From positions 5,270,001 to 5,334,000 of the forward strand of contig CP075494.1 in NCBI GenBank assembly GCA_021613535.1: a stretch of DNA of 64,000 nt, in the 5' to 3' direction. Positions within the stretch are counted from its first letter, which is position 1; each line of letters opens with the position of its first letter. This document shows, piece by piece, positions 9,100 through 45,797 of the stretch. The position numbers and the translations under genes are program-made. A model generated the notes under the pieces. It made no database searches. It was given only the letters and a program-made list of their open reading frames with translations, and had not been told where the DNA came from. The stretch comes from Adineta vaga. Lineage: Eukaryota > Animalia > Rotifera.

Positions 9100-11771
9100 A
9101 TGAAACTATTTGACAGAATGCTTCGTTCACAAAGTGATGTTCAATCTTCATGTAAATCTTATTTGAACAAAGCATCAATTACAATTCAACCGTCACATGC
9201 ATGCAATGTACTTAATTGTAAAAAATCAGCGGCAAGAAATAATCTTTGTACTCGACATTTTCTTGCAAAGAGAAAACGAAGCGATTCACTAGAAACTATT
9301 GCCGTCATTAATTCACGATCAAAGACGAATGCACATCTTCAATATACTTTATGTTCTGTAATTCAATGTGAAAAACCAACTGCTACTAGCGGACTTTGCA
9401 CAAAACATTATGCAGAACGTTTTCTTCACGAATTTAATGAAATTATCAAACCACAAGATAAAACTAAACAGAACAAATCTCAATATATGTGTTCCGTTGA
9501 AAATTGTGACAAATGGAGTCAAAGGAATGGTTTATGTTTACTTCATCTCCAAGAGAAGAATTCAACGACAAATAGAAAAACAAAAACAAAAACCATGACA
9601 AAGTCAGGTAGAGTATCAATGAATTCAACCATACAAATTTTGAATATCAATTCAAACAATTCATCAAATGTCAATATCCATGAACTAAATCAAGAAATAC
9701 AAAATATCATGACTTATTCGCGTAAGTTTTCTTTTCTAAATTCTATGTATCATTCAAATATTATCTTGTTTAGAAAATGCATGTCCACCAAGACGTTCTA
9801 CTAAACGAAATTCAAAGCAAAATCTTCAGTCAGAACAATCATCAACTATAGGTAAAAAAAAAGAAAAGATCTTCTTTATGTCTTAATCTGACATTTTTCA
9901 ATCATATTAGATGTTCAATCAAAAGATCAGAATGAAGAAATTGATATAAACAGATGTCAATATACAATTTCTATGAATAATCATAATAAATGTTCAAATC
10001 TAGCTACATACAAATGTTATCACTGCTTATCGTCATTTTGTCTTGAACATGATTTACAACATCAAGAAGATATCGAAGAAGAAATGACTTGTATACTTGA
10101 CGAAGCCAAAGTAAATAACGAGATTACATTCTATCTAATATGTATATTTATCTTCTATTCTAGACATTGATTACAGAAATCCCTTCAATAAATATCGAAA
10201 GTGGCAGAAAAAATTGTGCCGAACAATTAAAACATTGGTTCGATATGACATTGAATCAAGTTCAACAGAAATATTATCAATTACAAAATCAACTTGATCA
10301 AATTCATAATGATATCGAAACGAATAAAGATCGATGGAAACAATCCTTAATATCTCGACTAGAAACAAATCTCACTTCAGTTTTAACTATACAATTACAA
10401 ACAGAAAAGATCGATGGAATAGAAATAAACAAAGCAAAAGATGAATTAGTTCGCTTGCAAAAACTTTGTGATTTACTTAACAATCAAACATTAATTACTA
10501 TATCGAATATTGATGATAATAATGAATTAAATTTTCCTTTACCTCATTTAATATTTCCAAGTATTGATATTGAAGGTTTCAATTGGACTGATATATTTTC
10601 AATAGAAAAAAAAGAAGATAAAACAAATCAATCATCGAATTGTAAATGCAAATGATCAGAATCATATGACAATATATATTTGATTTGTTTAGATTTTGAT
10701 GAACTTCTTGAAGCAATGATTGATATCGATGGTCATCAATTGGTAAGTTAGTAAATATTTTATCTGACATTTATTTGTATTTTCAATTATTTTAAAGATA
10801 AATTCAACTAGACATGATACTCATCCAATAGATTTTATTGGTCAATTTGGAGAGAATAATATGCAACAGGTTTGATTTTTTTTCATTTCAGATTGATATT
10901 ATTTTCTATCATACGATTCATATTTAGAGTTATACAGAAACAAATGGCGTGTTTTCAACGATATGTGTATCTCAATGTCCTAAAATCAGTCATGAACAAA
11001 TTATTGCACGTCTTGAAGATTGTGAAAAACTGGATTTGTCATCACAGAATTTGATCTGTTCAGATGTGCAGATAATTTCTTCTATTTTACATAATAACAT
11101 GGTCAGTGAAATAATATTCATTAGTTTTCTTTTCTTATATTAATTCTTATGTAAATTAAAATTAGATATTGACAACATTGATTCTTTCTCGTAATCAAAT
11201 TAAAGATGACGGTGTAAAATTCTTGAGTAATGCATTACAAAATAATCAAGTAAGAGAAAAATCTATTGTATGATTCAATTTGAAGTATTGATGTTGGAAT
11301 ACATCTATGCATTTAGACAATAACCACGCTTGATCTTTCGCAGAATCAGATTGGCGATGATGGAGCACGAGCATTAAGTAATACATTGAAAACTAATATA
11401 GTATGATAAAGAATTATTTGATTCTCAAAACCTTTTCATAATTTAATATAGACACTTACATCATTAAATCTTTCTCAGAATCAAATTGGTACTCAAGGTG
11501 GACAATGTTTCATAGATGCATTACAATCAAATCAAGTAAGAAAAATAGCCTTTTCGTGAATCTCTGATTTCATTTATTCACTTTTGTTCAGACACTCACT
11601 ACACTGAATCTCACCTTCAATCCACTTAGCAATGAAATACTTTGTGATTTAACATTAGCTTTAACCATCAATTCAAGCAAAAAATCTATTCATAAATCAT
11701 CTAATACTCAGAATTTAGCATCAACTTCACTCTCTTCCACATCTAGCTTTTGGGATAGTCTATTTTTGTGA
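9100..11771 (+). CDS. ZnF/B-box-like/coiled-coil/LRR family member 1: three C-x4-C-x9-C-x2-H fingers, N-cap, three single-exon LRRs and a terminal LRR exon
   Basis: Fingers CNVLNC..LCTRH, CSVIQC..LCTKH and CSVENC..LCLLH. B-box-like C-x11-C-x7-C-x2-C-x4-C-x2-H-x3-H in exon 9912-10110. Helical exon 10165-10641. The 84-nt phase-0 LRR exons are 11166-11249, 11317-11400 and 11452-11535. Terminal exon 11592-11771 ends in TGA. Confidence 0.85.
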
Positions 11772-12151
11772 TAAACTGTGAATATGTTTTGTATATAATT
11801 CTATTCTGATGTCTGATTTCAAGATTCTTAAAACAAGTTGTTGCCATATTTATTTATAGAATATATTTTGAAGATATATAGATATTGTTTTTTCTAGTGA
11901 TACGAAGACGGTAAGATTCTATATTTTTACTTTCTATTGAATAAAAGATTGACTCACTCCTCTTTGTTCTCATATTTCACATTTATACTTCCATCTGTTA
12001 TGTTGATAAGTGAAATCTATGAATGATAATTTTTATTTGTCTGTCACATACACCAATCTTTATGTTAGCTATGTGTTCTCTTTTTTTTTATCTTAGCTTA
12101 TTAGTATCTTATCGAGCGATCATCTTGATTTTTTCATTACCAGTCATCTAG

Positions 12152-12772
12152 TTGAGTATGTCTTCAATTTCAAATGTAATTAACACTTCTTCTGGTGTTA
12201 TGCGGATGAATAGTATCATAAACCAATTTAATTTAATTGATTTACCAAAAGAAGGTGGTCTATTTCAAATAATTGATCGGTCGTCCATACAAGTATCTCT
12301 TCCACATCGTTCACAAGAGTCTACATTACGTGCTCAAAGTCATATTTATTACATGCTGACAAGTCTATGTCCAGATAAACAACATTTAACACATAATTAT
12401 TTACATTCAATTGAAGATGCCGATGATTTACATATATTGGTAGAAGGTGATAGCGTAGATTATTATTTATTTTATGAAAATGGTCATGTTGAACATAAAA
12501 TCTTAGGTCATGATTATATAAGTGGAGAATTACCGATTATAGCAACTCCAGGTACAATTACTTCCAAAGCATTGAAATTACGTCCTGGAAAAAATGGATT
12601 TGCATTCATTGTTAGTGTTCTCACTCCCGAATGGACACCTGAAAGATGTACAATTGGTGCTGGACAGTTATTTCTCGATAAATATATTGGCAAACAAGAT
12701 TGGTGTACAAGTGAATTTCTAAAAGAGTTAATTGGACCTAATTGGAAGGAGAACACTACGATAATTGATTAA
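12152..12772 (+). CDS. DUF985/Cupin_5-like cupin protein; HGT candidate
   Basis: Intronless. The pattern LIDLPKEGGLF...IYYML...LH...LH..EG...LG.D...GE.P...AF.VSV.TPEW resembles DUF985. The real start is probably ATG 12158. Confidence 0.65.
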   Translation: MSMSSISNVINTSSGVMRMNSIINQFNLIDLPKEGGLFQIIDRSSIQVSLPHRSQESTLRAQSHIYYMLTSLCPDKQHLTHNYLHSIEDADDLHILVEGDSVDYYLFYENGHVEHKILGHDYISGELPIIATPGTITSKALKLRPGKNGFAFIVSVLTPEWTPERCTIGAGQLFLDKYIGKQDWCTSEFLKELIGPNWKENTTIID

Positions 12773-12966
12773 TATAGAATTGCATTGAAATCAAATAGAT
12801 TTCTTTCAAAGCGGGAAATATCGTTTCGAACAGTTTTTTTTTGTCTCTATTCAATCTAAACCTTATCTTTTGTTGATATATCTACTTATGGTTTTATTTT
12901 TTTGCTAACATGATAACAAAGATAAGAAAGAAAAATAGTTTTTCATCATGCTCATCATTTCATTGA

Positions 12967-14364
12967 ATGGCAAAACGTCGTGATAGTAGAACTTCTCAAA
13001 AATCACATCATGAAGACGATATTCGACTTGAAGTAAAACGTTTTTTTTTCATGAAATTTGTTCATTCGAATTTGATTTGTTTACAGAAAACATTAGAAGG
13101 AAAAGAAGATTCAACTTATCTTGCACCTGAACAATATAATGGTCAACCAGTAATCAATGTTCCTGAACGACGGTTTGGTCCATCACCAGTCAATAAACAA
13201 TCTGATGAATATTGTATTCATCTTAAACAAATGGATTATATCAATAAACACAGTGAATTAAAACCAAGATTTGATGCAATGTTAACACATCGTTTAATGC
13301 AAACTGTACATGGTGATCAACGACATCCTCAACAACCATATCAGTATAAAAATTCTTTGTAAAATAAGATAAATTTATGATCGATTTTTAGAGATATTTA
13401 TCTATTAACATACGATCAAACATTTATTCATGCTTATTTATTATTACATGAAAATAGTTATGAACATTATACATATTTAATATGTCATGGAATTCGTCAT
13501 CAAATTGAAGATTTAAGTTCGATTGCGGATCGATTCTATCGAGATTTTGGAAATGTTTTAATCATTGATTATCGTGGTTTTGGAAATTCTTCGGGAAAAC
13601 AATCGGAACGTGGTGCTTATATTGATGTTCAAACAGCATTTGATTATCTTCTAACATTGGATACAATTGATCGAAAACGAATTGTTATCTATGGTGTTAG
13701 TATGGGTGTAGCTTTAGTTATTCAATTAGCAAGTGAAGTACATAATTCGGAAAATATTCATGCTTGTATTTTAGAAAATGGTTTTACATCAGTAAGAAAC
13801 ATCAGTCAAGTTGAATTTCTATTCATTTCGTTCGATAGTTTAAAGATGCTGCATCAGAGAAATCAGCCATCGCAAAATTATTACCATCGAAAGTATTCTC
13901 TGTAGGAATGCGATCGATTGATAAAGTTCATCAACTTCGTGTACCTGTTATGTATTTAATTGGATTGAATGATCAAATGATTCATCCAAAACATACGAAA
14001 CAACTTTTTGAAGCGACAACAAATTCCAAACATTGTCAGTTAGAAGTATTTGATCAGAAGAAAAAGAAAAGAAACCGTTCATTTCAATTAAATTCGTTTT
14101 GTTTTCTATTTATAGATCTATGCAGATGCAGGTCATACAGATGTTAAAGATATGCCTGATTATATTAAACGATCATATCGACCATTTATGAAAGCAGTAT
14201 GGAAAGTTTATAATCCAGATCAAATAGTTCCTCAACCACCTATTCTAGTAGCTGATCATGGAAAAAGTCGAGCTGTTAGTATAGATGAATATTTTGTCGA
14301 ACAAATGCATCATGTACCATCTACTAATCTTTCCTCATGTTCATTTTTCTTTTCTCATAAATAA
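12967..14364 (+). CDS. ABHD13/BEM46-like alpha/beta hydrolase, 5 exons
   Basis: The spliced frame gives CHG, DYRGFGNSSG..SERGAYID, the nucleophile motif GVSMG, LENGFTS, the acid in NDQMI and the His in AGH. Introns are at about 13033-13086, 13344-13391, 13792-13837 and 14046-14115. Confidence 0.8.
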
Positions 14365-14504
14365 TTCTATCGAACTAATCGACTGATTGAATCAACACTA
14401 TTTAAAACTTGTTTTGGTTTTTGTCTCTCTACAGTCGTCTAGGGCATATTTGAATGACTTCTTTTTACTGGAAAAAGAAGAGAAGGGTTGCACGCTCGAT
14501 TTAT

Positions 14505-14579
14505 TGGGTGCTCCGGTAGGGATCGAACCTACAACGTTTTTGTTAAAAGCAAAATAATCTACCGTTGATTTACAAAGCA
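14505..14579 (-). tRNA. Atypical tRNA-Lys(UUU) with an encoded 3' CCA
   Basis: The minus strand reads TGCTTTG TA AATC AACGGTA GATT A TTTTG CTTTTAA CAAAA ACGTT GTAGG TTCGATC CCTAC CGGAGCA C CCA. All four stems pair (two G-U pairs in the acceptor stem). A T5 run lies about 30 nt downstream. Confidence 0.75.
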
Positions 14580-14982
14580 AAGTAATCGAAGCATAATAGC
14601 CTTCTCTCTTGGTTACAACGGAAATGTCCTTTAATTTGCAGAAATATTGACGTGATGCAATTACATGTAGTGTGTTCTGCATTCTTATAACGTTCGTGTA
14701 AAACTACACAGCCACTTGACATTCAATACTATTGATATTGAAAGGTTTTTTAGTATAGATTTCGTTCTTTTCAGTCATACTCGATAGTTATCTTTCTATC
14801 TTTACATATTTTGTTATATTATAAACAACCACACGATATACAGTTGCATCTCGAACTTCTTCGCATTACGTGGTGGTATGATCATACGTGTTTGCGTTGG
14901 AATGCATGTACACTTTGAGTATAAAAGGAGAGTAACAAGTTCATAGTTACGATTATACACATCTTAATTTCAAGCGATCAAC

Positions 14983-16600: not shown

Positions 16601-17007
16601 GACAATTGTTAACCATAGTATTACTATCATCTTAATTAATTCAGTCGAAATGAAATACATAATTCATATTCCAGCATTTTCTGTTGTAATTTACTAATAT
16701 AAAACATTATCTTAATAAAATGTGTTGTATTTATGTATACATGGTTATACTATAGAGACAGATGTCCGTCATAATCATTTTTATTATACGTCAATTATTG
16801 CAATCTTGATTCATATAAGCAATTATACTACCTCGATAAGAATAGAGTAGATTTTGAGTCATCAAGTAACATAATCGAATATTTACGCACAGTCATTTTG
16901 CCAACGTGTCATAGAACAGAATGAAAAAAAAGAAGTATATAGGAGATGTGTTATAAAACAACAACAGAAAAGAAAGAGAAAAATATTTGATTAGAAAGAA
17001 ACAAAAC

Positions 17008-18531
17008 ATGTCGTCGTATATTCGTTCAATGTTGAATAAAATCTTTGGTAAACCTGAATACCGAGTTTTAATTATTGGTCTTGACGCTGCAGGTAAAACG
17101 ACGATTCTCTATCGATTGAAATTAGGCGAACCAGTTACAACAATTCCAACAATTGGTTTTAATGTCGAATCGCTAACGTACAAATCAGTACCGTTAACAT
17201 TTTGGGATATAGGAGGGCGTGATAAAATTCGTCCTTTATTTCGACATTATTTTCATAATACACAAGCACTTATGTTTATCGTTGATTCAAATGATAGAGA
17301 ACGATTACCTGAAGCAACTGATACTCTATGGCGTTTATTATGTGAAGATGAACTTCGTGAAATACCTGTATTGATTTACAGGAATAAAATGGATTTGGAA
17401 CATACCTTATCTCAAGAAGATATTATTGAACAAATGCGATTGAATGATATTCGAAATAGACCATGGCATATACAATCTTGTTCAGCTACTAAAGGTGATG
17501 GTCTATACGAAGGTTTAGATTGGATTTCACGTGCAGTTCAATCACCATCAAGTTATATCAAGACATCATCAGATGTTTCAACAACAAAATCAGATGATAA
17601 TTATCGTGAAACAAATAAGTCCTTACAATGGTTATCTCAAGAAGATGACGATACTGATGAAGAATTCATTGATAAATTTCAAAAACATCAATTGCTTTCC
17701 GAACAATTCGATCATCGATCATTCTTAAGAACAATCTGGAGTTATTTACAACTTCACAATCGAAAAGAAACGATCAAAGCAATATTTAATCATCTTCCTA
17801 CTTATATCAATGATATTAATGAAACATTGACTTATTTCTGGATTCAAATTGTTCATTATGCACGTGAAGCAACAAAGAATCCAACAAATGATTTTCCTGG
17901 ATTTTTATTGATGAATCCTCAAATACTGAACGAAGCAGAACTTCCATTAGCATATTACAAAAAAGAAACATTATATAGTAATCAAGCCAAAGGATCTGTT
18001 ATATTAGCAGATGTGAAACAGTTACCAAGTATTTTACCCACAGCAAATAAAGCTGTTTCGAAAGTGACTAGTGGAAGAGAAGAACAGTCTGTCGATGAAA
18101 TCGATGATGATGATGATGATGAATTTCTGAAACAATTTGAATCGTGTACATTGACAAGCTGGTCACATAGGACTCATGTTCGAATGGCATGGCTTTATCT
18201 GACACGTGATGGTCGTCGAACAGGTGTGAAGAAAATCTTTGATGGGATTAAAAACTTCTTGGAAAATACTCAAATATCATCCAAACCAACATTTCACTTT
18301 ACAATGACCTATTTCTGGATTCAAATGATAGATTTAGCAATTGCACAAAGTCCCAAGGAGACCACTTTTGAAGAATTTCTTCGTCTAAATCCTCAATTGT
18401 TGAAAGAAGATCTTTACTTTGATTATTATAAGAAAGAAACAATACTAAACAATCCAACTGCTAGACAAGAAATGGTCTTACCTGATATCAAACCATTACC
18501 AACTTTAGTCGTACAACAGACCAAAAAATAA
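17008..18531 (+). CDS. Arf-family GTPase fused to two tandem copies of an uncharacterised helical domain
   Basis: [29 protein letters not shown] and [16 protein letters not shown] are followed by two copies of DEEF..F....H...R..W..L...T.T.FWIQ...NPQ.L...YYKKET...D.K.LP. Confidence 0.85.
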
Positions 18532-25985: not shown

Positions 25986-28900
25986 TTATGCATATGAATT
26001 ATTTACTGAAATCTCGTCAGTATCATTCAGTTTTGATCCAAAACCAAAATATTTCAAGATTTCTTCTTTGACATGATTTAAACTCAGATCAATTGTTGTA
26101 AGTATCTATTTCGAATGGAACAAAAATCGATGAGAACAATGTTGATGAGAGCAAAATTCCATCTTACATGATTTAATTCTACTGCATTGTTGAGTTGTTG
26201 TACACCTTCAATTCCAATTTGATTTCGAGAAAGATCGAGTGTTATTAATGTCTATTATAATGAAAGAAATCTTCATTTATTTATAACCAAGGAAAAGAAT
26301 AGATTTCTTACGCGATTTAGTTTTAAAGCTTCAGCTAGATATTTCGCACCTGAATTACCAATTTGATTTCGAGAGAGACTAATTGTTGTTAAAGTCTACA
26401 TGAGAGTATGAAATAAAAGAAGAAAGAAAGAAAGAAAAAGATGATATTATACTTTGTTTGACTTTAATCCAGTACTGATATGTAGAATACCCTCATCTCC
26501 AATGGTATTTTCCGAAAGATTCAGAGTAGTAAGTGTCTAAATGAAAAATCGAAGGATTGATTTAAATGAAAGATGAGAATAGATCGAATTTACTTTATTT
26601 GATTTTAATAAAGCATTCAAATATTGTGCTGCTCGATTTCCAATTTGATTCCAAGAGAGATCGATTGTTGTTAACGACTATAATCAATATTAATCCACAA
26701 TAATTGAAAAATTTTCTTTATATTCTGTTTTGTCTTACTTTATTTCGTTGTAATGAATCGCTTAGAAATTTTAAGCTTCGATCTTCCATTGGATTTCCTG
26801 AAAGATTAAGCGTAGTCAATGTCTATATAAATGAATAAATCAGTTTTGTTTTCGAAGAAATCAAAGAATTGATCATTATTCTTACCTCGTTATATTTTAA
26901 TGTTAAACCCATATGACGCGCTACATCATCGCGAAAAGTATTTCCAGCGAGATTAAGTGATTGAAGTGTCTATGTGATCAAAAAGTAAATATATGAAATA
27001 GGAAAAAAGATGAGTTTTACATTATTTATTTGTAATGAAGAACTTATTCGTTGTCCACCTTCATTATCAATTTTATTCCACGACAGATCAAGTACACAGA
27101 GTTTCTAAGCGATAATTTTCGTATATGAAATGATAAAAAGATAAAAGAAGTCTATACCTTATTTAATTGTAATGCAATACTCAAATATCGTGCTCCTTCA
27201 TCGCCAATTTCATTCCATGATAGATTGAGAATAGTCAATGTCTACAATAAAATGTATTTATTCACACATATGTAGATTGAAAAAAGATGCTTCGCTCACT
27301 TTATTAAATTGTAATGCATTACTTAAATATTGTGCTCCAACATATGAGATCTTATTTCGATGAAGATAGAGTGTAGTCAAAGCCTAACATCATCTTTCTT
27401 TTGGATACAAAGGATAAGGATCGTTTTCCTACCTTGTTACTTTGTAATGCTGTACTTAAATACTGTGCTCCTTGATTTCCAATTTGATTCCAAGAAAGAT
27501 CAAGTGTAGTCAATGTCTATATATTCAACAGTAGTTGAATATTCTCTATCAAAACTAAATCATTGTCCTACTTTGTTTCTTGGTAGTACAATACCGAATT
27601 GATATGCTCCTTCATCTCCAAGTGGATTTCCAGATAAATTCAATGAAGTAAGTGTCTATGAAGACAGATAGCTAGGAGTTTAATAAATATTAAATTAAAT
27701 AATAACTCATACTCGATTTGATTGTAATGCAGCACTAATATAATGTGCTCCATCGTCACCAATTGTATTTCCAGAAAGATTGAGGACAGCTAAAGCCTAT
27801 AAGCACGATGCAGTCTTATAATAAACATGTTAATTGAAAGATATTTTTTGTCTAACTTGATTTGATCGTAGTGTAGTACTAAGAATTCGTGCTCCTTGAT
27901 CTCCAATTTGATTCCAACCAAGATCTAATGTTTTCAAAGTCTATATCTCAGAAAGAGTAATAATTGCAAAGATATTCAATCTATCTTATCGTTACATTAT
28001 TTGATTCCAATCCTTTTGTTAGATATTGCGTTCCTTTGTCTCGAATTCGATTTCCAGAAAGATTAAGAACGGTAAGTGTCTAGAATAAAAAAGAGTAATA
28101 ATCTTCAATTAATAATATGTAAAATGAATATGTGTTCTTACTCTATTTGAATCTAGTACATTACTTAAATATTGTGCTCCTTTCAGTGCAATCTTATTTT
28201 GAAGAAGGTTCAGATTGGTCAGCTTCTACAATAGAAGAAAAAGGTTAATACGCGAAAAAAACAAGTCATTTTTAATTTACTGTGTTCGATTGTAATGCAT
28301 CACTCAAATATCGAATACCATCAGCGGCTATGTTATTCTGATGAAGATCGAGTGAACTAATATTCTATTCAATATCATATAGAAAATATCGATATTTAAA
28401 GAATATATTACTAGATTGGATTTTAAAACATCACTCAATTGTTGTGCTCCTTCGTTTCCAATTTTCTTTCGAGATAAATTCAGTGCTGTAGGTATCTAAA
28501 TGAAAGCACATGAAACGTGTTTTTTTTTTACACTAAAAATCGGGATCAGCAATTGACTAACATTGCAGTTCTTCATCAGATGATGAATCATTATCTCTGT
28601 TTCTTGGCGACTTAGACACTGTGCCGAAAGATTCGTTTGATTGGTATTTCTTTTCTGTTGTTGTTGTTGTGAAGTAGAAGGACATGGTTGTAATGATTCT
28701 GAACATATTGATTCTGTATCTAAAGAAATAATGATGAAAAAGGAACAGAATGTAAGTCGTTTTACTCAATCTATTTAACTTCTATCTGAATATTATATTT
28801 GTACACCCTCAAGAACTAACCTTCATCGTCGATGTCACTGTCATTTTCAACATTCGATGAAAAATCATTCGAACTAAATAAAAAGAAAATAAAAATTAAC

Positions 28901-30040
28901 TTCTTCAAGATATTTCCAACTACTTCTGTTTTGTTACAATGGGTGATTTTGTAGAAGATACATCATTCTGAAAAGAAAGAAATCGATAAAATTAATTAGT
29001 GGAATAAAACATCATTAAACCTGTTGAATACTATTATTTCTAGACTGATCTAAAGCATCGAAGACAATTTCACTTGTACTGTTGATCATCATTGAACTAT
29101 CTTCCAATATTGAAATATCCTAAGTAATGTATAAGAACGTATGATATATGAAAAACTAGACGAGTGTCTTATCATTTTATACTTCTTGTGGTAATTTGAT
29201 TTTTTTACTTTGATGAGTATGCTCATGATTTGTAATTCTCGTTGACTTTTCAATAGTATCTAAATTCCATCAGAAACACTTAAATTCAATAACTATGACT
29301 TCATAACCAATTACTTTCTTCTTGAATACGTTTTTGTGAAGGTCTGTTGTTTTCTTCTACTACATTATTGTGTGATATTTTTTCAATCGATTGAGAATCA
29401 TTAATTATCAAATTTCGTAAAGTTAACCGAGGTGTAATCAAATCAAAATTCGAATCTGCAATATCGGTTAGAGTAATCATTGCTTGACTATTTAGTAAAT
29501 TACAAAGTTTTTGGATACGAACAAATTCATTTCTTGCTTTATTTAATACAATTCCATCAATTTCATGTGAATGTAATTGTGTATTGAATACAGAGATCAC
29601 ACTGGTTTCCATTTGTTTGATTAATGATGTTTTCCATTCATCTTTTTGTGTTTCAACATGATTATGAAGTTCATGAAGTTGTATTTGAAATTCTTTATAC
29701 TTTTGTTTCATTTTATGAAGAATTAGTTTAATCCAATCTTGACATTGTTCAATACAATTCGTTCGGCCACTTTCGATATTTAATAAGGGTATTTCTGCCA
29801 TTAATTCCTAAAAAAAGAAAAAGAAACATTGATTGTACTTAATGGCAAATCTTGTCTATTCTATCTAACGTGTGCTTCATCCAGTAGATAGTTAATTTCT
29901 TCTCTTAGATCTTCTTGATGTTCTAATCCATGTTCAAGACAATAGACAGTTGAGCAATGAGAACATTTGTATATTGCTGACATTTCACATACAATACTAT
30001 CGATTGCAGATAATTGATATTGACATTTATTACTGTTCAT
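25986..30040 (-). CDS. B-box-like/coiled-coil/LRR family member 2 with 17 single-exon 28-aa LRRs and a terminal LRR exon
   Basis: Starts MNSNKCQY..CEMSAIYKCSHCSTVYCLEHGLEH; coiled coil in ORF 29301-29801; N-cap exon 28719-28562. The 84-nt AG/GT-bounded exons are 28412-28495, 28281-28364, 28142-28225, 27996-28079, 27857-27940, 27713-27796, 27572-27655, 27433-27516, 27300-27383, 27158-27241, 27021-27104, 26886-26969, 26739-26822, 26594-26677, 26453-26536, 26312-26395 and 26168-26251, all stop-free. Terminal exon 26105-25986. The small linker exons were not individually verified. Confidence 0.9.
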
Positions 30041-30515: not shown

Positions 30516-32033
30516 TTATGGTTGATACAATTCGCAGCTATTTAATACCATACCACTCGTATTTTGTCCGCCACATACGAGTACTTGTCCCGTATTGGTA
30601 AGTAACGTCGTACTATGATCAGCACGATCTGAAGACATATTGCCTGTCGGGATGAATATTTCCGATATTGGTTCGTAGAGTTCACATGATGATAATCTTC
30701 TATTGTCTTGTCCACCGATTATTAATACTTGCTCATTACGGAGAAGAACAGCACTGTGGTATGCTCGTGCATTTAAAGTACTACCGTTTAAAACAGTAAA
30801 ATTAAATGTTGTCACATTAAATAAATCGTATGTTTGTAATGCACCTGTTGATGATAGACCACCAACAAACAGGACAGCTTGTTTCGATGGAATAAAAGTT
30901 GCAGTATGATGTGCACGACCAATTGACATACGCATAGGCAGAGATACGAATAAGTTTGAAGTACTATTATATAATTCAAGGCTATCAAGAAATATCGAAT
31001 TGTTATTAATTCCACCAGCTAAAAGTACATAACCGTTATCTATAACTGTAGCTGTATGAAAGCTGCGCGTTGATATCATATTATTGCCAACTGGAATGAA
31101 TATACCAGTTGTTGTGTTAAAGATATCTCCAGAAGCAAGTACTCCACTCTCATCCTTACCACCAACCAGTAAAACATGCGCTGATATATTTTTATTATCA
31201 TTGAAAACGGCGGACGCAGGACTAGCACGAGCTACTGTAGGATTAATTGTTTTGTTGGAGACTCCTGCTACTGAATCATAGAGCTCTGCAGTTCGAAGCG
31301 AAGACCATCCACCAACAAGTAACACCAGATGACTATCGATAGACTCGGCTATATGGAATTGTCTTCTCTGCGATGTATCTCCTCGTCGAATGAATGAACG
31401 ATTCGATAAATGAAATATTTCAGTTGATGGTAGATCACTGGAACCATCATTACCACCTATTATTAAAACTGCATTCGTCGCAGCAATGAACGTACTTGTA
31501 TGAAAACTGCGTACTGACGTCATATTGCCAACATAATACCACATTCCAGAGTGTACTATAGATAGAAGTCGTCATAGGAAATGATATACTTTCAAAATAA
31601 AGATACGTATTTATACATACATGGTGTAGTGCTCATTATTGTTGAAGTTGCAATAGAAGAACAAAGATTATCAGGTACTAAACGAAACAATAGTTTTGTT
31701 TCATGTTCTAAAAAAATTGATAGACATACCATGGTTTTTTCGATGACAAATAACACTTGCTCGAATATTTCCTGATGATTGTATACTATTTGTTTGACAT
31801 AATTCAGTAAATAACGAGCAAATATTATCATCTTTGAAATAGACAGCTGTTTGACAATTTTTTTCATATACACATTCCCATATACAAGATTGAATCGAAA
31901 TATTACTTGACCATGTTACATTGCGAAGAAAATTACAAGAAGAAATAGGCTGATAGATAGCTGATCGATGAATTACAGTTATTATTAGAGTATCAATCAT
32001 CAGAAGAAAAAGCGAAATCAATAAGGCATACAT
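30516..32033 (-). CDS. Secreted PAN/Apple domain plus Kelch (galactose-oxidase-type) beta-propeller protein, 3 exons
   Basis: Signal peptide and CIWEC..EKNCQTAVYF..NIC.LF (PAN/Apple). Introns are 31729-31678 and 31620-31556. About 7 repeats of R..H.AT.L..G.VL..GG....L.S.ELY.P follow. Confidence 0.82.
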
Positions 32034-35930: not shown

Positions 35931-38132
35931 TTATATTCTAGACTTCAGTACAGTCGCTAGTTTTTCCAATGTTTTCTTCGGCACTTCATTCCAAGTAAGA
36001 TTAATTGTTTCAAGTGTCTGATAAGTAAAGATGATGAAACAGAAAGAAAACAGAGTCAATTGTATATCTACTTTATTTGTTTTCAATACATTAATCAAAT
36101 TCTGTGCACCTTCTTCATCGATTTCATTATGTGATAGTTCTAGTATAATAAGTGTCTAAAAAAGAAAAATCTACCTACTGTGAAACGAAGAATTTGACTC
36201 ACGTTATTCGAACGTAATGCAAGACTTAAATAATGTGCTCCAGAATAACTAATTCTATTTCAAGAAAGGTTTAAAGCCGTAAGAATCTACAAAAAAAGAT
36301 ACGACTCGTTAAATCAAAAGATAAAACATGATTTGTACTTACTTTACTATTATTTAATAGATGACAAGCAACAATTTCCATATCTTGACAAGTTAAATTT
36401 CTCAATTTCAAATTTAATTCAATCTCATTCTTTTGACTTGCTATTGTTTGTTTAAGATCAACGTTATCATAGTCAGATATTACCGGTACTGATTGTGCTT
36501 TTGAAAAACCTAGAGGATTAGTAAGAAAAGATGGTTATGAAAGAAATCATTTGAATTATGAACTTGAAAAATTAGAACCTTCCTCTTCTACAGTACTGCT
36601 AATCGCATCACTAAATTGAAAAGAAATAAATTCGTCATTCATAGAAATGTTTGTGACTTATTACTTTTGCATATTGTTGAGAATTGAACGATTTAGATAT
36701 TGATTATTCTTTATGGATAAGAAAATTAGATACAAATATTTCATCGAATGAATTTAAAGAAAAACTTCACACCTGTAGATCCTCTGTATTAGAAGAGATG
36801 CCATCGATCATTATTGCATTAATTTGTTCGTGATTAAATTTTTCCAATTTGATAAGTGGATTAATTATATCATTGCTTGTTGGCATTGTGAGAAAGATAA
36901 TGTCAGAATCTATTGCATAGATACATATCATTTGAAATGAATATCGATTGCTTCACATATACTTACCATCATTTCTGGTACTAATTGCAGTGTGAATTTG
37001 CTTCCATTGATTTGTATCTTTTGATAAAGTATCTGCAGACAATTCATCGATCCAATCGAAATCATTGAAATTTATACTTGGAAAATATAAATGTGGTATA
37101 TTCACATCGATTTTATTGTCTTCAATATTAGTAACAGTAATAAGTGCTTGATTCATTTCTATACGATTAATCTTATATTTTTCTAATTGAGCTTTTAATA
37201 CACATTGTACTTTTGTTTCTAATCGTTTAATTAATGATCTTTTCCATTGCTCTTTCTTTGTTTCTATATGTTTATGATACTGATTCAATTGCAATTGATA
37301 TTCTTTATATTTTTCTTTGATTTTCGCAAGAATCATTTCCATCCAATATTTAAATTGTTCAATACAATTCTTTCGGCCACTTTCGATATTTATTGATGGT
37401 ATTTCTTCGATTAATACCTAAATTACATATCTAAGCAGTTAAAACATCTATAAATATATATCAAAATGACAACAAACCTGAGATTCATCCAAAAGATAAT
37501 TAATTTCTTCTTCGAGATCTTGTTGAAATTCATTTTGATTTTCTTCGATGATAAAGCATTGATATTTATTTGTATTTACATATTTCTGAGTTGTCGGTTC
37601 AACTAAAAATACTGCAATTTGTAATGAATAGTATCAATTATTTGATTTGATTACCTGCTGATGAATAAGTAGTAAACCGATTCTTTTCGTCCGATGAAAA
37701 CAAATTTCTTTGAATGTATTGTTTTGGATTAGCTGCTTTTCTTCGTAAGCACATACTTGATCTCGTATTTTGACTTATATCAGTATGCATCGTATTTGCT
37801 GGGCATATAGAATCTGATTCTTTGATATTTGTAGCATTTTGTAATTCCTTGTAATGTTTGCATAGATTTTTCACTCGAGGACGTTTGAAGCAATCTTTAT
37901 AAATACAGTTTCGTTTTTTACGTTGCGTATAAGTTTTTTTTTTATCAGTAGCTGTAGGATGCTTCGTGGATAGCACCATATTTTGTATAACTGTTGCATG
38001 TCGACAGCAAACACCTCCCGATTGAGATTGTTTTGTACAATTCGAAATTTGACAAATACGAACACGTTTTCTCTTTTTACGAGCATGTAACGACATTTCA
38101 CTGTCTATAATCTCACTTGATTCGTGTGACAT
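35931..38132 (-). pseudogene. ZnF/coiled-coil/LRR family member 3, degenerate
   Basis: Two CCCH-type fingers in ORF 37638-38132. The B-box Cys/His residues are deleted in exon 37602-37478, and the coiled coil has an 18-aa deletion. LRR exons are 36203-36286 (in-frame TGA at 36260-36262) and 36072-36155, with terminal exon 36017-35931. Confidence 0.78.
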
Positions 38133-39326
38133 CGTTCTAACAGATATTACTTATCCGATACAACCTTGATATTTATTTAATAATATATTAATATGATACT
38201 TGCGTTACTGTATCGGTTCACATTTGTTTTGTTTCCTTCATAACAATACAATATACCTATACATATGCACGTGGATGCGTACTAAATTATCTTTCTATCA
38301 ATATTATGAGTGTGTCCTTCTACTACTATCATAAATGTTATGTCCAACAAAAAATGGATGATAATTGACATATGTATTTGAATTTTTTTAACTTTCTGCT
38401 GATTATTATACATACAGTCTAACTCATATAGATTGTGAACATCACTGTTCATCATTTTCTTTTGACTGAGAGAGATACACAATAGTATTAAAATATATTA
38501 GTATGTAAGAGGACACCAAAATCATTGTAGAGATTGGTCTACAAATTTTATTACGAAATTTATTTAGATTCGAACACGTGATTACTTTACGCATGATTTT
38601 TGTTATAGGTCTTTTACGCATCAACATATCCACTGTTTCTAGTGTGAGAGATTATAATCGTATAAATTCAGATGCTAACTTCAAACTTTTCCTGAGAATT
38701 AACTATGTTACATCTTTTGCCAACTTTAAAGTTGATATAAAAATAATTGTTCTAAAGACAATTGCGATGTGGCGACGATACATTGTCAATATTTTGGTGT
38801 AAGCGTTAAGTGCGTTATTGCATATTCACGATTTCCGACAATCACATATACTGCGATATACCAAACTCCGCGTGAACCTGTCGGACATATTAATCAACGT
38901 CAGTTGATTGAAAATAAAAATGAACTTAGAACTGAAGTGTGCTTTCGTATTTTCTTATTTAATCAAATCTTGAATAGCTCTATCATTCTACTACAAATTT
39001 CACTATCATTTGTTGTTGATCACTATTATCGTTCAACTCTCAACACGTTACTATATTGTTCAGACTGTGTCGCACGTATTCATATGCGTACTAGATTTTA
39101 TCAAAGACAAGCAGTTTCATCCATAGATTATCATACTTTCTGTTCTACAAGATATTAGTGTATAATTCAGGCATTTACAAATTTGCCTAAAATAAGGAGT
39201 CCATTAGCTAAATTTTTATGCAGAAATCAATCGATAACATCACAACGGTAAGTCATTTTTATGAAACAAAATCTGAAGCTAGTAGCATATCTAAAAGCAT
39301 AGTCTAGATCGTAAAAAGGGCCACCC

Positions 39327-42300
39327 TTATGCCATGTCCACGGATTCGTTCCAGTTCTTATTTCTTTCTATCATATTCAACAGCTGATTCTTCACATCAC
39401 CTGAAATACTATTGCCATCCACATTCAATGAGATCAGTGTCTGTAATGTAATGCGACGATTTCAAAGAGATAGATAGATAATAAGCTACTTCCTTTACCT
39501 CGTTCGATTGTAGTGCATTGCTCAAATATTGTGCTCCTTTATCTCCAATACCATTGAGAGAGAGATGAAGTGTGGTGAGTGTCTTCAATGGAATGCAATG
39601 ATTGTCAAGATACTAGTTGAACGAATGTGGTATGTCTCACCTCGTTCGATTGTAGTGCATTGCTCAAATATTGTGCTCCTTTATCTCTAATACCATTGAG
39701 AGAGAGATGAAGTGTGGTGAGTGTCTTCAATGGAATGCAATGATTGTCAAGATACTAGTTGAACGAATGTAGTATGTCTTACCTCGTTCGATTGTAGTGC
39801 ATTGCTCAAATATTGTGCTCCTTTATCTCCAATACCATTTCCAGAGAGATGAAGTGTGGTGAGTGTCTTGAATGGAATGCAATGATTGTCAAGATACTAG
39901 TTGAACGAATGTGGTATGTCTTACCTCGTTCGATTGTAGTGCATTGCTCAAATATTGTGCTCCTTTATCTCCAATACCATTTCCAGAGAGATGAAGTGTG
40001 GTGAGTGTCTTGAATGGAATGCAATGATTGTCAAGATACTAGTTGAACGAATGTGGTATGTCTTACCTCGTTCGATTGTAGTGCATTGCTCAAATATTGT
40101 GCTCCTTTATCTCCAATACCATTGAGAGAGAGATGAAGTGTGGTGAGTGTCTTGAATGGAATGCAATGATTGTCAAGATACTAGTTGAACGAATGTGGTA
40201 TGTCTTACCTCGTTCGATTGTAGTGCATTGCTCAAATATTGTGCTCCTTTATCTCCAATACCATTTCCAGAGAGATCAAGTGTGGTGAGTGTCTTCAATG
40301 GAATGCAATGATTGTCAAGATACTAGTTGAACGAATATGGTATGTCTTACCTCGTTCGATTGTAGTGCATTGCTCAAATATTGTGCTCCTTTATCTCCAA
40401 TATCATTGTAAGAGAGATCAAGTGTGGTGAGTGTCTTCAATGGAATGCAATGATTGTCAAGATACTAGTTGAACGAATATGGTATGTCTTACCTCGTTCG
40501 ATTGTAGTGCATTGCTCAAATATTGTGCTCCTTTATCTCCAATATCATTGTAAGAGAGATCAAGTGTGGTGAGTGTCTTCAATGGAATGCAATGATTGTC
40601 AAGATACTAGTTGAACGAATATGGTATGTCTTACCTCGTTCGATTGTAGTGCATTGCTCAAATATTGTGCTCCTTTATCTTCAATACCATTGTAAGAGAG
40701 ATCAAGTGTGGTGAGTGTCTGTCAAAGGAAGAACTATAGCAGTTTAGTACTATAATGATCAAACTTGCAGCATGTTTGTTTGTAATCTTATTCGACAAAA
40801 TCCTGACCTTTTGACTATTTGTGGTATAGGTAAGTGACAGTTATGTTTTGGTTAGTGGAACTGGAAGTGGACAATCGATTCAGTTCTCAGGAATTACTGA
40901 AGATGAGTTGTAACACACTTATGTGTAAACAGTTTTTGTAGCATATAGATTAATCGACGATAGAATGAGTGATTTGAGCGGAAGGTTGGCTACTAAAGGG
41001 TTGGTTAAGCTAGTTTTTGGCTTTCATATAGTTTGATTTGTAGTACATGAATAAACTTATGAGTCGATAAATTTGGATAAATGGGAATGAGAAGTATTAC
41101 AAAGAATTATCAACGGTACGAATATTCATGTTGAAGGATAGTTAACCGTGGAATGCTGCGAATATACACAGTGATTGGGGTCATATGAAGATTTGTGTGT
41201 TATTCAACCTATATTATCATGTCGACGAGATAAACTTGATATTGCCGCTTGAGCAAACATTTCGAGTTCAGTGAAAAAAGAAAGTTAGTTATTAGATACA
41301 TTTCGCTCTTTGAGCGTGACGGAGAATAGGGATTTAGCTCAATGTTGCCCATTTGTTTCAATGGAAAACAGTGTCTGTGGAGAGAGAAGTTGTTCTAAAT
41401 GGAACCTCAACTACACTCTAAGGTCGGATTGATCCTAAGTTTTTTGCATCCTTTAATTCCTATATTTTCTGATATCTTCTATCCGTTCCATATATTTTAA
41501 TCAATATTGATATATTTTTTAGAGCTTTGAAGGGTTCTATCAACATGTAGTAAAAAATTGAAAACTGACCGAAATATGAAAGAAATATAGAATGGCAACA
41601 AGTATAGGAATACAGAAACTATATGTCGAATCAGATCCTAGCTTACACTACTTATTACAAATAGTAAAACCAGAAATTTGAGTTGAATCTTTTTTTTTGT
41701 TGAAATCAACTAGAGTAGACAATAGTTGGTTCTACGGTATGTCGAATATGTTATTGTCGATGAAGTAATAATACAACACAATGCTGAAACTTGTCAATTG
41801 TTTGATTCATTATTTTGGAAATAATAGATTTTTTATCATATATTGGTCTATTTTATCTATTAAGATTTTATGCTTTTCGCCTCAGAATCAATCTTATATC
41901 TTTGCATTATTCGAAATGGTTTTGTATTGAACACTCGACTAATGCTGCTCAACTAGCATTCAGGCAAGGCGATACTGATAGCCGTATCGTTATCTATTTG
42001 TCGCAATTATTATAAGAGATAGACGTATTTTCAACTTCAAGTCTATTTATTTGTCGAAATAAAACGAGCAAATGGGCAAGATCTTGTTTATTCTAATGAA
42101 AAGAAGAAAAATAGAGTGGAACACATCAGAAATTTCCCTGAATAAAACGAATTCAAGTCTATTTATATATTGATGTAATGATAAAAGATGGAAGTTTCCT
42201 GACTGAAGTGGTGTATCTATCACGAGCTATAATTTAAATCAATCTATCATAGTAGGGAAGTTCAGATAAACCAAGATATTGTAATAAAATTCGCACAAAC

Positions 42301-45300
42301 TTTGCATCGTCTAATATTTGTTTAGGATAAATACGTTAGCATTTCCAAATACTAAAAGCAAATGTGTTTTCTTACCGTGTTGTTTTGTATTGCCTTTGAG
42401 ATAATTATTTTCACATCTTGTTGATTCAATTGCAGATAAGATAAACACAACACCGCGCTATCTTTATGACTCGCAATTCGTTGTTCGAGTTCTTCATTGT
42501 GATAAAGAAATGTTTTCTCAGCTAACATGAAGTCTAAAGAAAGTAACAAAATACAAAATATATGATTACTAAGAAAATCAATGATTTGAACCAAAATCTA
42601 ACGGCACTACAAAGAATATAATTCTTGTTTGAACAAAAAGTATAACTTGTCAAAGCTTTCATCTCGAAAGATCAGCTTTGGTTTCGAAAGTATTGTTATC
42701 AAGTATGGTTTTTGTACAGAAACAATTTTTTGAAGATTTCATAATTGAATAAAGTAAATGTGAAGTGTACCACTGCTCATCCTGTTAATGTAGAATTTAG
42801 CATTTCGAATGATTTGTTTATTTAATATGCAATCTGTGAATGAGTTCACATGAATATCTAGTGAAATCATCGTTCTTAATTTCAAATCAAGCATTCAACA
42901 ACTTTTCTGAACTGCGTATTGAAACATATCAAAACATCCAGCGTTAACTGAATCTATTCATCCGATCAACTTTTTATTAGAGCTGTACAATTTACGCTCA
43001 CGCTCATGACCATCGTGTAGCCGTAACAGCTAGCTCTATTATGAGGGCTGCCAATGGCGGTTCATTGTGTCACACCAGTCAACAATGATTAAAAAAGACT
43101 TTATTTTCATAGTATAGCTCAAAGAAGATTGTAACGCTCATTACAAATGAGCGTGAATTATACCACCCGAATTTTCATACTTATTCTATAATGTTCAAAC
43201 TTGAATTCTCAGAGTAATCCACGATCTCAGATGCTTCAGCATTTGAACTGATTAATTTCTCACAAATGATTATTGTTTGACATTATGAAACTTCTTTATT
43301 TTCAGTTCTCAACTTAATTTTAAACTATACGCACAGATATATTTTTCTGATGAGTAGTCAACTATCAAGTTTACTTAACTAATTTAAATATGCTTTATAG
43401 ATATTATCAATCAATTAATCATCTCCTACTGATTTCAGTAGTACATAACTGTCGTTATCAATAACGAACTTATATATTCAGAATAAAGTCGTACGTTTTC
43501 TCTGGCCTAATATCATGAGAAGATACTCAAGTATTATTATTCGTTTACCTATTTCTGCTGCTATTGTTCCTGTAGTACTTGCTCTTGATTCGATAGAACT
43601 AAAATAAAAATATGCGCAAGTCATACAACAAAGAGATCTTTGTAGCTATGTCTTTTTAGTTCATACTTGTCACTTGAGCCATTTGGATTTGAATTCGACA
43701 TAAAATCTTGTCCATACACCTAAATAATGTGATATTTTCATATAGCTTTGATGTAAGACGAAGAATTAAACGATAGTGTACCTCTTGATTACCATGATTC
43801 ATTGGTTGATTATGAAAATTCTCAGTAGTTGTTGATGTATTAATAATCTTTGACGAAAATTGCTGTTCGGGTGTGTTAATCTATGTGATTTTTATGATTT
43901 CAGACATATTAAGGATCCAAAAAAATGCTAGCTTACCATAACTTCTGTCTCTTTCCTTGTTTTGGTTTTGTTCATTTTAATATGGTTCGCTGTCGTCGGA
44001 GTGACATCAAAGTCTGGATTATCTGCCAGGTCAAAAATAAATATCATAAGTGTCAACAAGAAATATAACAAGTTATAAGTAATAAGTGGATATTTCAAAG
44101 TATGATTAAAGGAATTGTTTCATACAGACAAAAGTTCCTATTTCTCTCGCTTGATTTGTCTAAAAAAGACTAAGATAAGAATAACAGGACAACTAAGGAG
44201 GATCATTCTACATTGATTCTATACGTGAAACTTTCAAAGTGACATTTAATGATTCGATTTTACTGAGTCTGAATTTTAAAAGATAAAAACTATTTTTCTG
44301 AACGACACTCGACGACTGGAGGAATCTCCCAATATCACTACTTACTATTCGTCAATTCAGAACGATTGCGCTGAACAAGATTAGTTTGCTGTTGACCAGA
44401 ATACTCCATCGTCTCTACTCTAGTATCCATAAGAAAATTCGTGATCCGGTCGATATTGCCAGTAACAATCGTCGGAAAAGATAGATAAGATGTATCTTGG
44501 TCCACTTGATTGATAGCATTGGACGAAGAAATGGAAATTAACGGTTTGTTTTCAAGTGAATAGAAGAATTGTTGTATATGAGCAAACTCATTTTTAGCTC
44601 TACTAAATTCTATTCCATCTATCTCAGCTTTTTGTGACTGTTCCATCAATACACAACCAACTTTTGTTTCTACTCGATTGGCTAATCGATATTTCCATTG
44701 GACTTTGCTCTCGTCGATATATCTGTTTTTTCGGTCGAGTTCCATTCGAAGCACATTAAATCGATTATCAATAATGTTACGCATGATTTGTTGCCATTTA
44801 TGAAGATCTTCTTCGCAATTCTCCCGGCCACTAATAATATCTATTGCCTGAATTTTTTTGAATAAATCCTAGAAAAAAGGACAACTACAATTACTCATTT
44901 TATAGTAAGTTATAGTTGAGTGGAAGACAAAGAATTAGATTCACTCTGTTATTTGTCGGACTAATTTTTCAAACAAAGTGACTTTAACAATAGAAATATG
45001 CTGAACATTTATAATTAGAATATTGTTTTCATAGAATATGACAATATACCTCTGTTTCACCTAATAGACGCTTTATTTCTTCTTTGAGCTGTTGCTGATG
45101 TTGCACGCCATGTGGAAGACAAAATGATGATGGACAATGACTGCATTTATAAGACGCCACATCTCGACAACTAAAATAATCACTAGATGATGGAGGCATA
45201 TATTCACACTTTCCTGTATGTGCTATTCTGTTTTGGTTATTTTGATTGTCAGTAGAATTCTCAGCTAATAAATGTGTAAATATTGAAAAATATATAAACT

Positions 45301-45797
45301 ATGTGGTAAATGATGTCACAATAGTTACCTGATCGTTCAATGGTTATAGAAGAATGAGTCATATACATTCCATTAATAGATCCTGTGTCGTTACCTATAT
45401 GTTGCATTTGTTCGAGACCAACATGTGGAACAGTACTCTGTCCATTTAAATAAATTGGCGTTGTTGCTCCATGCATATTTTCTGAAATAGATGGAAAAAA
45501 GAAAGATATCGTTAGACATTTCTACTTAATACTCAACGAAGACATACCATGTCCCTCACAAAAGTTTGAGCTAGCACAATTTTCATCGGACAAATCTGAG
45601 TTAATTGCAGTGGCATGTTGACGATTTTTTTTTTCAGTCAAATGTCGAGCACATAAACCTTCTCGTTGAGATTGTTTCTGGCAGTTATCGATTGAACAGA
45701 TGCGCCGCCATTTATCGTTAACGAGTCTCTTTTTCACATCACTGTGAGCCAACGATTTAACGCGTGTCTTATTTTTGGTGACTTTACTTGGTATCAT
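39327..45797 (-). CDS. ZnF/B-box-like/coiled-coil/LRR family member 4 with nine near-identical single-exon LRRs
   Basis: Exon 1 (45797-45548) has CSIDNCQKQSQREGLCARH. B-box-like exon 45264-45050 reads CEY..CRDVASYKCSHCPSSFCLPHGVQH. Coiled-coil exon 44868-44346; N-cap exon 42533-42376. Nine LRR exons lie in 39499-40718 and the terminal exon 39440-39327 ends in TAA. The linker exons (43500-44300) could not be phased unambiguously, so intactness is unproven. Confidence 0.78.
39497..40720 (-). repeat. Tandem repeat with a 142-bp unit (84-nt LRR exon + 58-nt intron); 9 exons and 8 introns
   Basis: Exons begin at plus-strand coordinates 39499, 39641, 39783, 39925, 40067, 40209, 40351, 40493 and 40635. 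Each reads ag|TLTTL(H/D)LS(L/G/Y)N(G/D)I(G/R/E)DKGAQYLSNALQSNE|gt on the minus strand. Confidence 0.97.
41418..41641. mobile_element. Possible decayed MITE in an intron of family member 4
   Basis: Left end ctaaggtcggattgatc is an imperfect match to the reverse complement of the right end, ctaggatctgattcgac. There is weak subterminal inverted similarity (ttcctata), and tacact occurs on both flanks. Confidence 0.3.
42978..43170. mobile_element. Candidate hAT-like MITE (193 bp) in an intron of family member 4
   Basis: Left end tagagctgtacaatttacgctca versus right-end reverse complement tcgggtggtataattcacgctca. The flanks ctttttat and attttcat match at 6 of 8 positions (possible TSD). The acgctca motif is repeated subterminally. 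Confidence 0.5.

Follow-up and report, generated by a model that had tools for sequence, protein, structure and literature searches.

A candidate family of intracellular zinc-finger and leucine-rich-repeat proteins, restricted to bdelloid rotifers, in a gene cluster of Adineta vaga

A stretch of 64,000 nucleotides (nt) from chromosome 5 of the bdelloid rotifer Adineta vaga (positions 5270001-5334000, here called the window; GC about 30% throughout) carries four paralogous genes, M1 to M4. On balance, sequence and structure models suggest that they belong to an undescribed, bdelloid-restricted family of soluble intracellular binding proteins with zinc fingers, a pairing helix and a variable leucine-rich-repeat (LRR) surface. 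The genes share one architecture, which in M1 is carried by a single mRNA, the family has a narrow taxonomic range and is clustered, and the LRR number changes cassette by cassette. From the N- to the C-terminus the order would be none to three CCCH fingers of the WRKY19 type with basic flanks, a disordered linker, and an eight-ligand finger, possibly for two zinc ions, which runs directly into a helical hairpin of about 130 residues, followed by a second linker and a capped LRR solenoid of the ribonuclease-inhibitor (RI) type.

An earlier note, made from the sequence alone, had listed four such paralogues, and six-frame scans and lists of open reading frames (ORFs) recovered them all: M1 on the plus strand (9100-11771) and M2 (30040-25986), M3 (38132-35934) and M4 (45797-39327) on the minus strand. 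The numbers it had given for M1/M2/M3/M4 were borne out, with 3/0/2/1 CCCH fingers (the second M3 finger being degenerate) and 3/17/2/9 internal LRR exons of 84 nt. Its motif for the central finger, C-x11/12-C-x7-C-x2-C-x4-C-x2-H-x3-H, is exact and could be extended by one additional invariant His, and its helical-exon motif is present in the four paralogues. The decay that it had mentioned for one member was likewise found, in M3, as the zinc core is deleted, about 18 helical residues are gone and one LRR exon has an in-frame stop, and so were the basic clusters beside the fingers (KRKR after finger 1 of M1, RKKRKR in M3). A Pfam scan and hydropathy analysis revealed, as proposed, no signal peptide, transmembrane helix or NACHT domain. 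Duplication, gain and loss of LRR exon cassettes and decay of a member were all seen, in agreement with the birth-and-death evolution that had been suggested.

Transcript, taxonomic range and paralogues

Contigs from four public runs were aligned to window positions 9000-12100, whereby the label RNA for a run is a guess, but contigs without introns and with canonical splice borders are as expected of transcripts. In two runs one contig each (2376 and 2190 nt) joined all 11 M1 exons and skipped ten GT..AG intervals of 51-67 nt, a third run confirmed seven of these ten joints, and none of them was found in the DNA-like run X8. A reading-frame check of the joined exons led to an uninterrupted ORF of 701 amino acids (aa). 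As single spliced contigs span all modules, the N-terminal and the LRR exons are not separate genes in M1, and the outcome that the earlier note had named as speaking against its reading is thus excluded for this member. M1 was expressed in several unrelated runs, and the same module order was observed in independent gene models from A. steineri (711 and 739 aa), Rotaria sordida (857 aa) and R. socialis (682 aa). A separate observation concerns window position 9100, the first base of the presumed M1 ATG, which was A/G heterozygous in run X8 (G depth 46.6/97.4); one haplotype would begin at GTG or at the next ATG, 9118.

A profile of the four helical exons found only 41 representatives among 1.84 billion proteins. 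All named holders were bdelloid (A. vaga, A. steineri, R. sordida and R. socialis), and the remaining relatives were single-exon ORFs from metagenomes. In the A. vaga genome (six contigs, 100.8 Mb) the same profile matched seven loci, six of them within 65 kb, namely M1-M4 in the window, U2 and U1 at 6 kb and 16 kb upstream of it, and one copy on chromosome 4. The helical exons of the paralogues matched one another at E 1e-52 to 1e-66 in this search, so the pattern is not due to chance. In a maximum-likelihood tree of the helical region the A. vaga copies fell into three lineages or more, all of which also contained sequences from other species, and M1, U1, U2, M2 and M3 appeared as local duplicates in one clade. 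The paralogues are old, with synonymous divergence (dS) from 0.6 to saturated and an amino-acid identity of 23-53%, and the helical exon showed a ratio of nonsynonymous to synonymous divergence (dN/dS) of 0.3-0.7.

Database entries of this architecture are unnamed and literature searches gave no description of it, in line with the earlier note, which had not recognised it as a named family. No papers were found on rotifer or bdelloid B-box, NHL or Zf_WRKY19/PF24906 proteins, and the family is not mentioned in PMC7145615, PMC8195603 or a bdelloid infection preprint. The domain classes are all known; their combination, the family-specific helical exon and the restriction to bdelloids are not described in the searchable literature.

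Two observations were made at the upstream loci. U2 (C5:5264418-5266050) has kept the B-box-like and helical exons and has no LRR exons; downstream on the same strand follow a FLYWCH finger (24.9 bits, above the Pfam gathering cut-off (GA) of 23.6) and a weak MULE-transposase-like ORF, an arrangement reflecting either a fusion or a transposon insertion. Just upstream of U1 (C5:5251067-5252536) lies a 490-aa frame with a borderline match to ADP-ribosyltransferase exoenzymes (24.0 bits, cut-off 23.4).

Fingers, helical module and predicted dimer

The queries in the domain and fold searches were single exons or database proteins, namely P0001 (NCBI model of M4), P0002 (NCBI model of M3) and homologues of these. 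The central finger has eight invariant Cys/His residues in 11 sequences (C-x11/12-C-x7-C-x-H-C-x4-C-x2-H-x3-H), and these eight ligands make the binding of two zinc ions possible. It gave no match to the Pfam B-box (PF00643) at E<=1; the hit to ANCHR-like_BBOX (E 0.006) was below threshold, with zf-AN1 and C5HCH scoring similarly. An AlphaFold model of the finger by itself (mean predicted local distance difference test, pLDDT, 85.6) matched MYND, A20 and B-box folds equally weakly, the best hits being MYND in Foldseek (E 2.7) and the Rabex-5 A20 finger in VIA (Z 4.2; the COL2 B-box reached Z 3.3). The term B-box-like therefore suits the ligand spacing, and membership in the Pfam B-box family is not demonstrated.

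Modelling of the finger plus helix segment led to three helices (residues 35-64, 72-136 and 142-164; pLDDT 85-96). Foldseek returned no PDB match for this model at E<=0.001, an hmmsearch of the family profile A3 against PDB sequences gave nothing relevant, and a wide VIA-align search (best Z 7.1) returned generic helical proteins that are not discriminating, among them the TRIM coiled coils of Brat, TRIM72 and TRIM5 with Z 5.6-5.9. The best shape match of the helical module in the ESM Atlas was the RING-less TRIM14, weakly, with a TM score of 0.39. All matches of an Atlas feature search stayed below 0.9 and are leads only; they include uncharacterised clusters of B-box plus LRR_4/LRR_8 proteins.

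When the finger plus helix segment of M4 was predicted in two copies, a homodimer with ipSAE 0.63 was obtained, the best of three controls reaching 0.00. Of the proteins solved as pairs of one chain, 21 of 30 reached the mark used for calling a dimer, and none of the 23 solved as single chains did. The runs shared at least 82% of their contacts, with a partner pLDDT of at least 71. In the best-defined contacts the residue numbers of the two chains add up to about 176-184 and helix 1 packs against helix 2 of the partner, indicating that the long helices would cross antiparallel around residue 88. The prediction supports, and does not prove, an antiparallel dimerisation of the fragment. What stands of the oligomerisation proposed in the earlier note is this predicted homodimer.

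A profile of the central finger recovered the six intact family fingers in the A. vaga genome at E 1e-23 to 1e-26, and 48 additional, weaker places spread over all chromosomes. The eight of these 48 that were fetched are long open frames starting with C-x2-C-x7-C-x2-C-x4-C-x2-H-x3-H, followed by a helix with conserved Trp, and one of them terminates in a TLDc domain. Comparison of the family with this wider finger and Trp-helix module by hhalign gave a probability of 98.5% (E 2.1e-15, 149 columns), and the M1-M4 family would thus be the LRR-bearing branch of a bdelloid module family. Both groups have a homologous finger and helix; the wider group (at least 48 A. vaga loci) differs by a canonical C-x2-C first pair, by mostly one long frame and by other C-terminal domains such as TLDc or, in Atlas clusters, NHL, and it escapes the helical-exon profile, which finds only the seven loci. 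Its profile touches the B-box region of TRIM25 marginally (E 0.024). A module family with interchangeable C-termini, as it appears from these sequences, resembles the logic of TRIM proteins; descent from them is not established. A Hint domain (91.9 bits) was observed in P0061/P0036 (A. steineri CAF4021416.1, CAF1278588.1) together with a WRKY19-type finger and the second half of the helical module, which may be a further C-terminal partner of the module or a chimeric gene model.

The N-terminal fingers match Pfam Zf_WRKY19 (PF24906), with exon 1 of M1 at 34.3 bits (GA 27). A search of the A. vaga genome with PF24906 gave a single weak match, as the model is only 24 positions long, and a family-specific finger profile was used instead, which led to about ten further sites. 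At L018 (C1:10727431) a finger and an HMG box share one open frame, and at L014 (C4:871188), L015 (C4:13467233) and L016 (C1:1420963) the finger lies between DUF4819, the N-terminal domain of Capicua, and an HMG box; the pattern in these four Capicua-like genes is RKKFNGKQWRRLC...C..H. At L017 (C5:11060197-11060978) and L019 (C2:7213262-7213983) a TALE (KN) homeobox and a BRCT domain come after two or three fingers, a combination that to our knowledge is not a recognised one. Because the same finger type occurs in HMG-box and homeobox genes, there is indirect support from sequence for a nuclear or nucleic-acid-associated N-terminal end, and to this extent the earlier suggestion of possibly nuclear proteins is retained. 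With Zf_WRKY19 proteins the family shares the C-x4-C-x9-C-x2-H finger; it differs from them in that its units are isolated, separated by linkers and joined to an LRR protein, single units remaining below the threshold.

Repeat cassettes and gene structures

The LRRs are of the RI type, as LRR_6 (PF13516) matched homologues including P0001 above its cut-off, with 29.8 to 204 bits, and the repeat has 28 residues with the consensus TLTTLNLSxNxIGDEGAxYLSxALxSNx. Nearest solved relatives were RI-like proteins, LRRC34, the axonemal DRC5, NLRP14, NLRP5, NOD2-like proteins and RanGAP (best PDB E 5e-40 to 1e-32). Each internal repeat is encoded by its own frame-neutral 84-nt exon, and the number of these exons is unlike from locus to locus (M1 3, M2 17, M3 2, M4 9, U1 6, U2 0, chromosome 4 copy 9). 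The 17 LRR exons of M2 are old, with a mean pairwise nucleotide identity of 0.60.

The nine cassettes of M4 are young. Their exons vary in seven columns, all of them nonsynonymous and within nt 16-38, at codons 6, 9, 11 and 13; at codon 9 (TAC, GGA or CTC) all three bases differ, in units that apart from this show about 97% identity. The other 46 nt of the exon do not vary, and the 58-nt introns have four variable columns. The variable codons sit in the beta-strand and the following loop of the LxxLxLxxNxI motif, and this is the ligand-contacting face in RI-type LRR complexes. The focus of the variation on the putative binding face is suggestive only, because the numbers are small and the window of codons was picked after the data had been seen. 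That the LRR would always be the fastest-evolving part was rejected with the A. steineri pair P0005/P0043, where it is the most conserved (88% identity vs 51% in the fingers); LRR diversification is therefore not general.

Table 1. Exons and repeat arrays of M1 to M4 (window positions)
Gene	Feature	Positions	Strand	Basis
M1	Exon 1, three Zf_WRKY19-type CCCH fingers, KRKR after finger 1	9100..9721	+	PF24906 34.3 bits; RNA contigs for end
M1	Exon 2, hydrophilic linker, 75 nt	9774..9848	+	GT..AG joints in contigs X1, X2; absent in DNA-like run X8
M1	Exon 3, atypical 8-ligand zinc finger (B-box-like) and helix start	9908..10110	+	RNA contigs; sub-threshold Pfam zf-AN1, C5HCH
M1	Exon 4, family-defining helical (coiled-coil) exon	10164..10641	+	RNA contigs, profile; modelled as helical hairpin
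M1	Exons 5-6, short linkers (10693-10741, 10797-10867)	10693..10867	+	RNA contig joints
M1	Exon 7, LRR N-terminal cap	10926..11100	+	RNA contigs, ORF
M1	Exons 8-10, three internal one-repeat 84-nt LRR exons (11166-11249, 11317-11400, 11452-11535)	11165..11535	+	RNA contigs
M1	Terminal coding exon, last LRR, tail, stop	11592..11771	+	701-aa ORF; transcript contig continues to ~11942
M2	First coding exon, B-box-like finger; no upstream WRKY19-type finger	29864..30040	-	Motif scans
M2	Helical exon	29304..29807	-	Profile match
M2	Array of 17 internal 84-nt LRR exons, introns 47-63 nt	26168..28495	-	Exon scan
M2	Terminal LRR exon with stop, boundary approximate	25986..26105	-	Sequence
M3	Finger exon, RKKRKR, then one intact and one degenerate finger	37641..38132	-	PF24906 19 bits, sub-threshold; annotated UJR20361.1
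M3	B-box-like exon remnant, zinc-binding core deleted, C-terminal helix part alone kept	37478..37603	-	Sequence
M3	Helical exon, internal deletion of ~18 residues, in-frame stop at end	36956..37417	-	Alignment
M3	LRR remnant: N-cap, exon 36203-36286 with in-frame stop, exon 36072-36155, terminal repeat	35934..36534	-	Exon scan
M4	Finger exon, one finger	45525..45797	-	Motif; annotated UJR20362.1, partial
M4	B-box-like finger exon, C-x12-C variant	45032..45199	-	Motif
M4	Helical exon	44341..44868	-	Profile match
M4	LRR N-cap exon, approximate	42376..42534	-	Sequence
M4	Young tandem array of nine 84-nt LRR exons, 58-nt introns, period 142 nt, 97% identical	39499..40718	-	Repeat and exon scan
M4	Terminal LRR exon with stop, approximate	39327..39440	-	Sequence

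The three fingers of M1 (C-x4-C-x9-C-x2-H) lie at nt 9202-9258, 9352-9408 and 9490-9546, corresponding to aa 35, 85 and 131; in the degenerate finger of M3 C-x-H is present where C-x2-H is expected. The exon scan, in which open 84-nt windows with AG/GT flanks and the LxxLxLxxN motif were required, detected 3, 16, 2 and 9 LRR exons in M1, M2, M3 and M4. In the seventeenth exon of M2 (28412-28495) Lys replaces the motif Asn, and all 17 are open with AG/GT flanks. The intron that separates the N-cap exon of M4 from its first cassette is unusually long, at about 1.66 kb (40719-42375), the other introns seen in the family measuring 47-67 nt; no LRR remnant was seen in the long intron.

The four genes are interspersed with unrelated ones, a Cupin_5 gene, an Arf GTPase fusion and an intronless Kelch protein. 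The fusion is a single 514-aa open frame (16987-18531, plus strand) of an Arf-family GTPase (216.8 bits) with a region of about 330 residues that is apparently internally duplicated and has no Pfam match. The Kelch-repeat ORF (342 aa; 30516-31544, minus strand) lies directly upstream of M2 on the same strand, separated from it by a stop codon and about 430 nt.

Proposed function and rival explanations

In the mechanism that we favour, the finger plus helix module would pair two chains antiparallel, and the resulting dimer would present two LRR binding surfaces. The protein would most likely act by binding, that is, it would capture, tether or sequester a protein ligand, because no catalytic, signalling or death-fold domain is present: NACHT, NB-ARC, TIR, RING and death-fold domains had no Pfam match in the window exons and seven full-length homologues, and neither a transmembrane helix nor a signal-like N-terminus was found (maximum KD19 of 1.43, within the LRR). 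Through the optional N-terminal fingers the complex may be attached to nucleic acid, chromatin or a partner protein, since A. vaga has this finger type in HMG-box and homeobox genes as well, and duplication of exon cassettes would retune the repeat number and the residues of the concave face. Cassette turnover and the birth and death of members, as judged from the sequences, fit a changing recognition task, e.g. in conflict with pathogens or selfish elements. Only tentatively would we extend this to a receptor family for defence or genome conflict without NACHT and RING, in which a TRIM14-like antiparallel dimer carries LRR arms retuned by single-repeat cassettes, with selection on four concave-face codons and with fingers coupling recognition to nuclear nucleic acid.

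Several results weigh against a family of paired binding proteins with finger and LRR ends. The single fingers of M3 (19.0 bits) and M4 (21.6 bits) stay below the PF24906 cut-off, and no finger was detected in M2 and the chromosome 4 copy, which have otherwise kept the architecture, and the finger end can thus be dispensed with. Fold searches placed neither the central finger nor the helical part. The dimer mark is reached by 17 of 29 eukaryotic proteins and by only one of the seven among them without an older solved relative. Transcript support among the four members is confined to M1, and the LRR of the A. steineri pair P0005/P0043 is the best conserved part.

Comparison with known systems also sets bounds. 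The TRIM-like layout claimed in the earlier note holds as an analogy, since RING-less TRIM proteins (TRIM14, pyrin/TRIM20) similarly have a small finger of cross-brace type, then a long helix, predicted antiparallel in the family, and then a C-terminal recognition domain. It remains an analogy because no member has a RING; moreover the first ligand pair is C-x11/12-C and not C-x2-C/H, PF00643 is unmatched, the C-terminus is an RI-type LRR and not PRY/SPRY or NHL, WRKY19-type fingers are added, and no sequence relation between the helical part and TRIM coiled coils could be detected. NLRC-type genes encode one LRR per 84-nt exon, and the likeness to vertebrate NLRs drawn in the note is correct for the variable number of RI-type repeats in symmetric exons of a cytosolic protein (NOD1/2, NLRC3/5); as a family comparison it fails because NACHT is missing, as are NB-ARC, CARD, PYD and any other death fold. 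Ribonuclease inhibitor and LRRC34-type proteins have the same 28-residue RI-class repeats (LRR_6), and they lack zinc fingers and coiled coil.

That the family consists of signalling innate immune receptors, whose LRR senses a pathogen molecule and whose finger and coiled coil trigger defence by higher-order oligomerisation as in TRIM5, pyrin or NLRs, is possible but rather unlikely. The one-repeat 84-nt exons of the NLRC type, the tandem cluster in which members were gained, were lost or decayed, the fact that the young M4 cassettes vary only by nonsynonymous changes at beta-strand and loop codons, the predicted dimer and the TRIM14 shape match, though weak, would suit such receptors. No NACHT, TIR, death-fold, RING or other output domain is present, however, and seven loci per haploid genome are far fewer than an expanded receptor repertoire typically has. 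LRRs of the RI type are just as typical of ciliary and RanGAP-type proteins, the LRR is the most conserved region in P0005/P0043, and LRR, NLR or B-box genes go unmentioned in the transcriptome preprint on bdelloid infection. A nuclear regulator or a factor controlling selfish elements, with fingers that bind DNA, RNA or chromatin and an LRR that recruits or blocks a nuclear protein, e.g. a transposase, appears unlikely to us. The finger type common to Capicua-like HMG-box and TALE-homeobox/BRCT genes and the KRKR and RKKRKR clusters adjoining the fingers point in this direction, as does U2 with its FLYWCH and MULE-like ORFs in place of LRRs, although a transposon may simply have been inserted there; that Zf_WRKY19 binds nucleic acid is not established, and the members without a detected finger keep the remaining architecture.

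A housekeeping LRR scaffold, cytoskeletal or ciliary for example, with neutral differences in LRR number, would explain why the axonemal LRRC34 and DRC5 are among the best solved LRR relatives and why M1 is expressed in unrelated runs. The restriction to bdelloids, the fast evolution of the paralogues (as seen in their low identity), the decaying member and the concentration of cassette variation on the binding face make it quite improbable. As NCBI models of M3 (343 aa, without LRR) and M4 (partial) end early, the architecture could also be an annotation illusion, with finger/helix and LRR exons belonging to separate genes or the whole cluster being pseudogenes. The spliced contigs from two runs, which span all modules with an intact ORF, refute this for M1, and with 17 consecutive open exons bordered by AG/GT in M2 and full-length models in three other species it is extremely improbable for the family.

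If the family were an ordinary scaffold, its value would reduce to a documented case of exon-cassette evolution. Its finger plus helix module, which in bdelloids is combined with LRR, TLDc, Hint and possibly a transposase, parallels the modular logic of TRIM proteins. If a receptor family for defence or conflict is indeed present, it would mean that an ancient asexual lineage of animals had evolved an intracellular LRR receptor independently. With regard to how bdelloids, as ancient asexuals, match pathogens and selfish DNA, the family is a specific and testable candidate for recognition that can adapt rapidly without sex, because it is lineage-restricted and clustered, is built from frame-neutral cassettes and contains a young array that varies at binding-face codons only.

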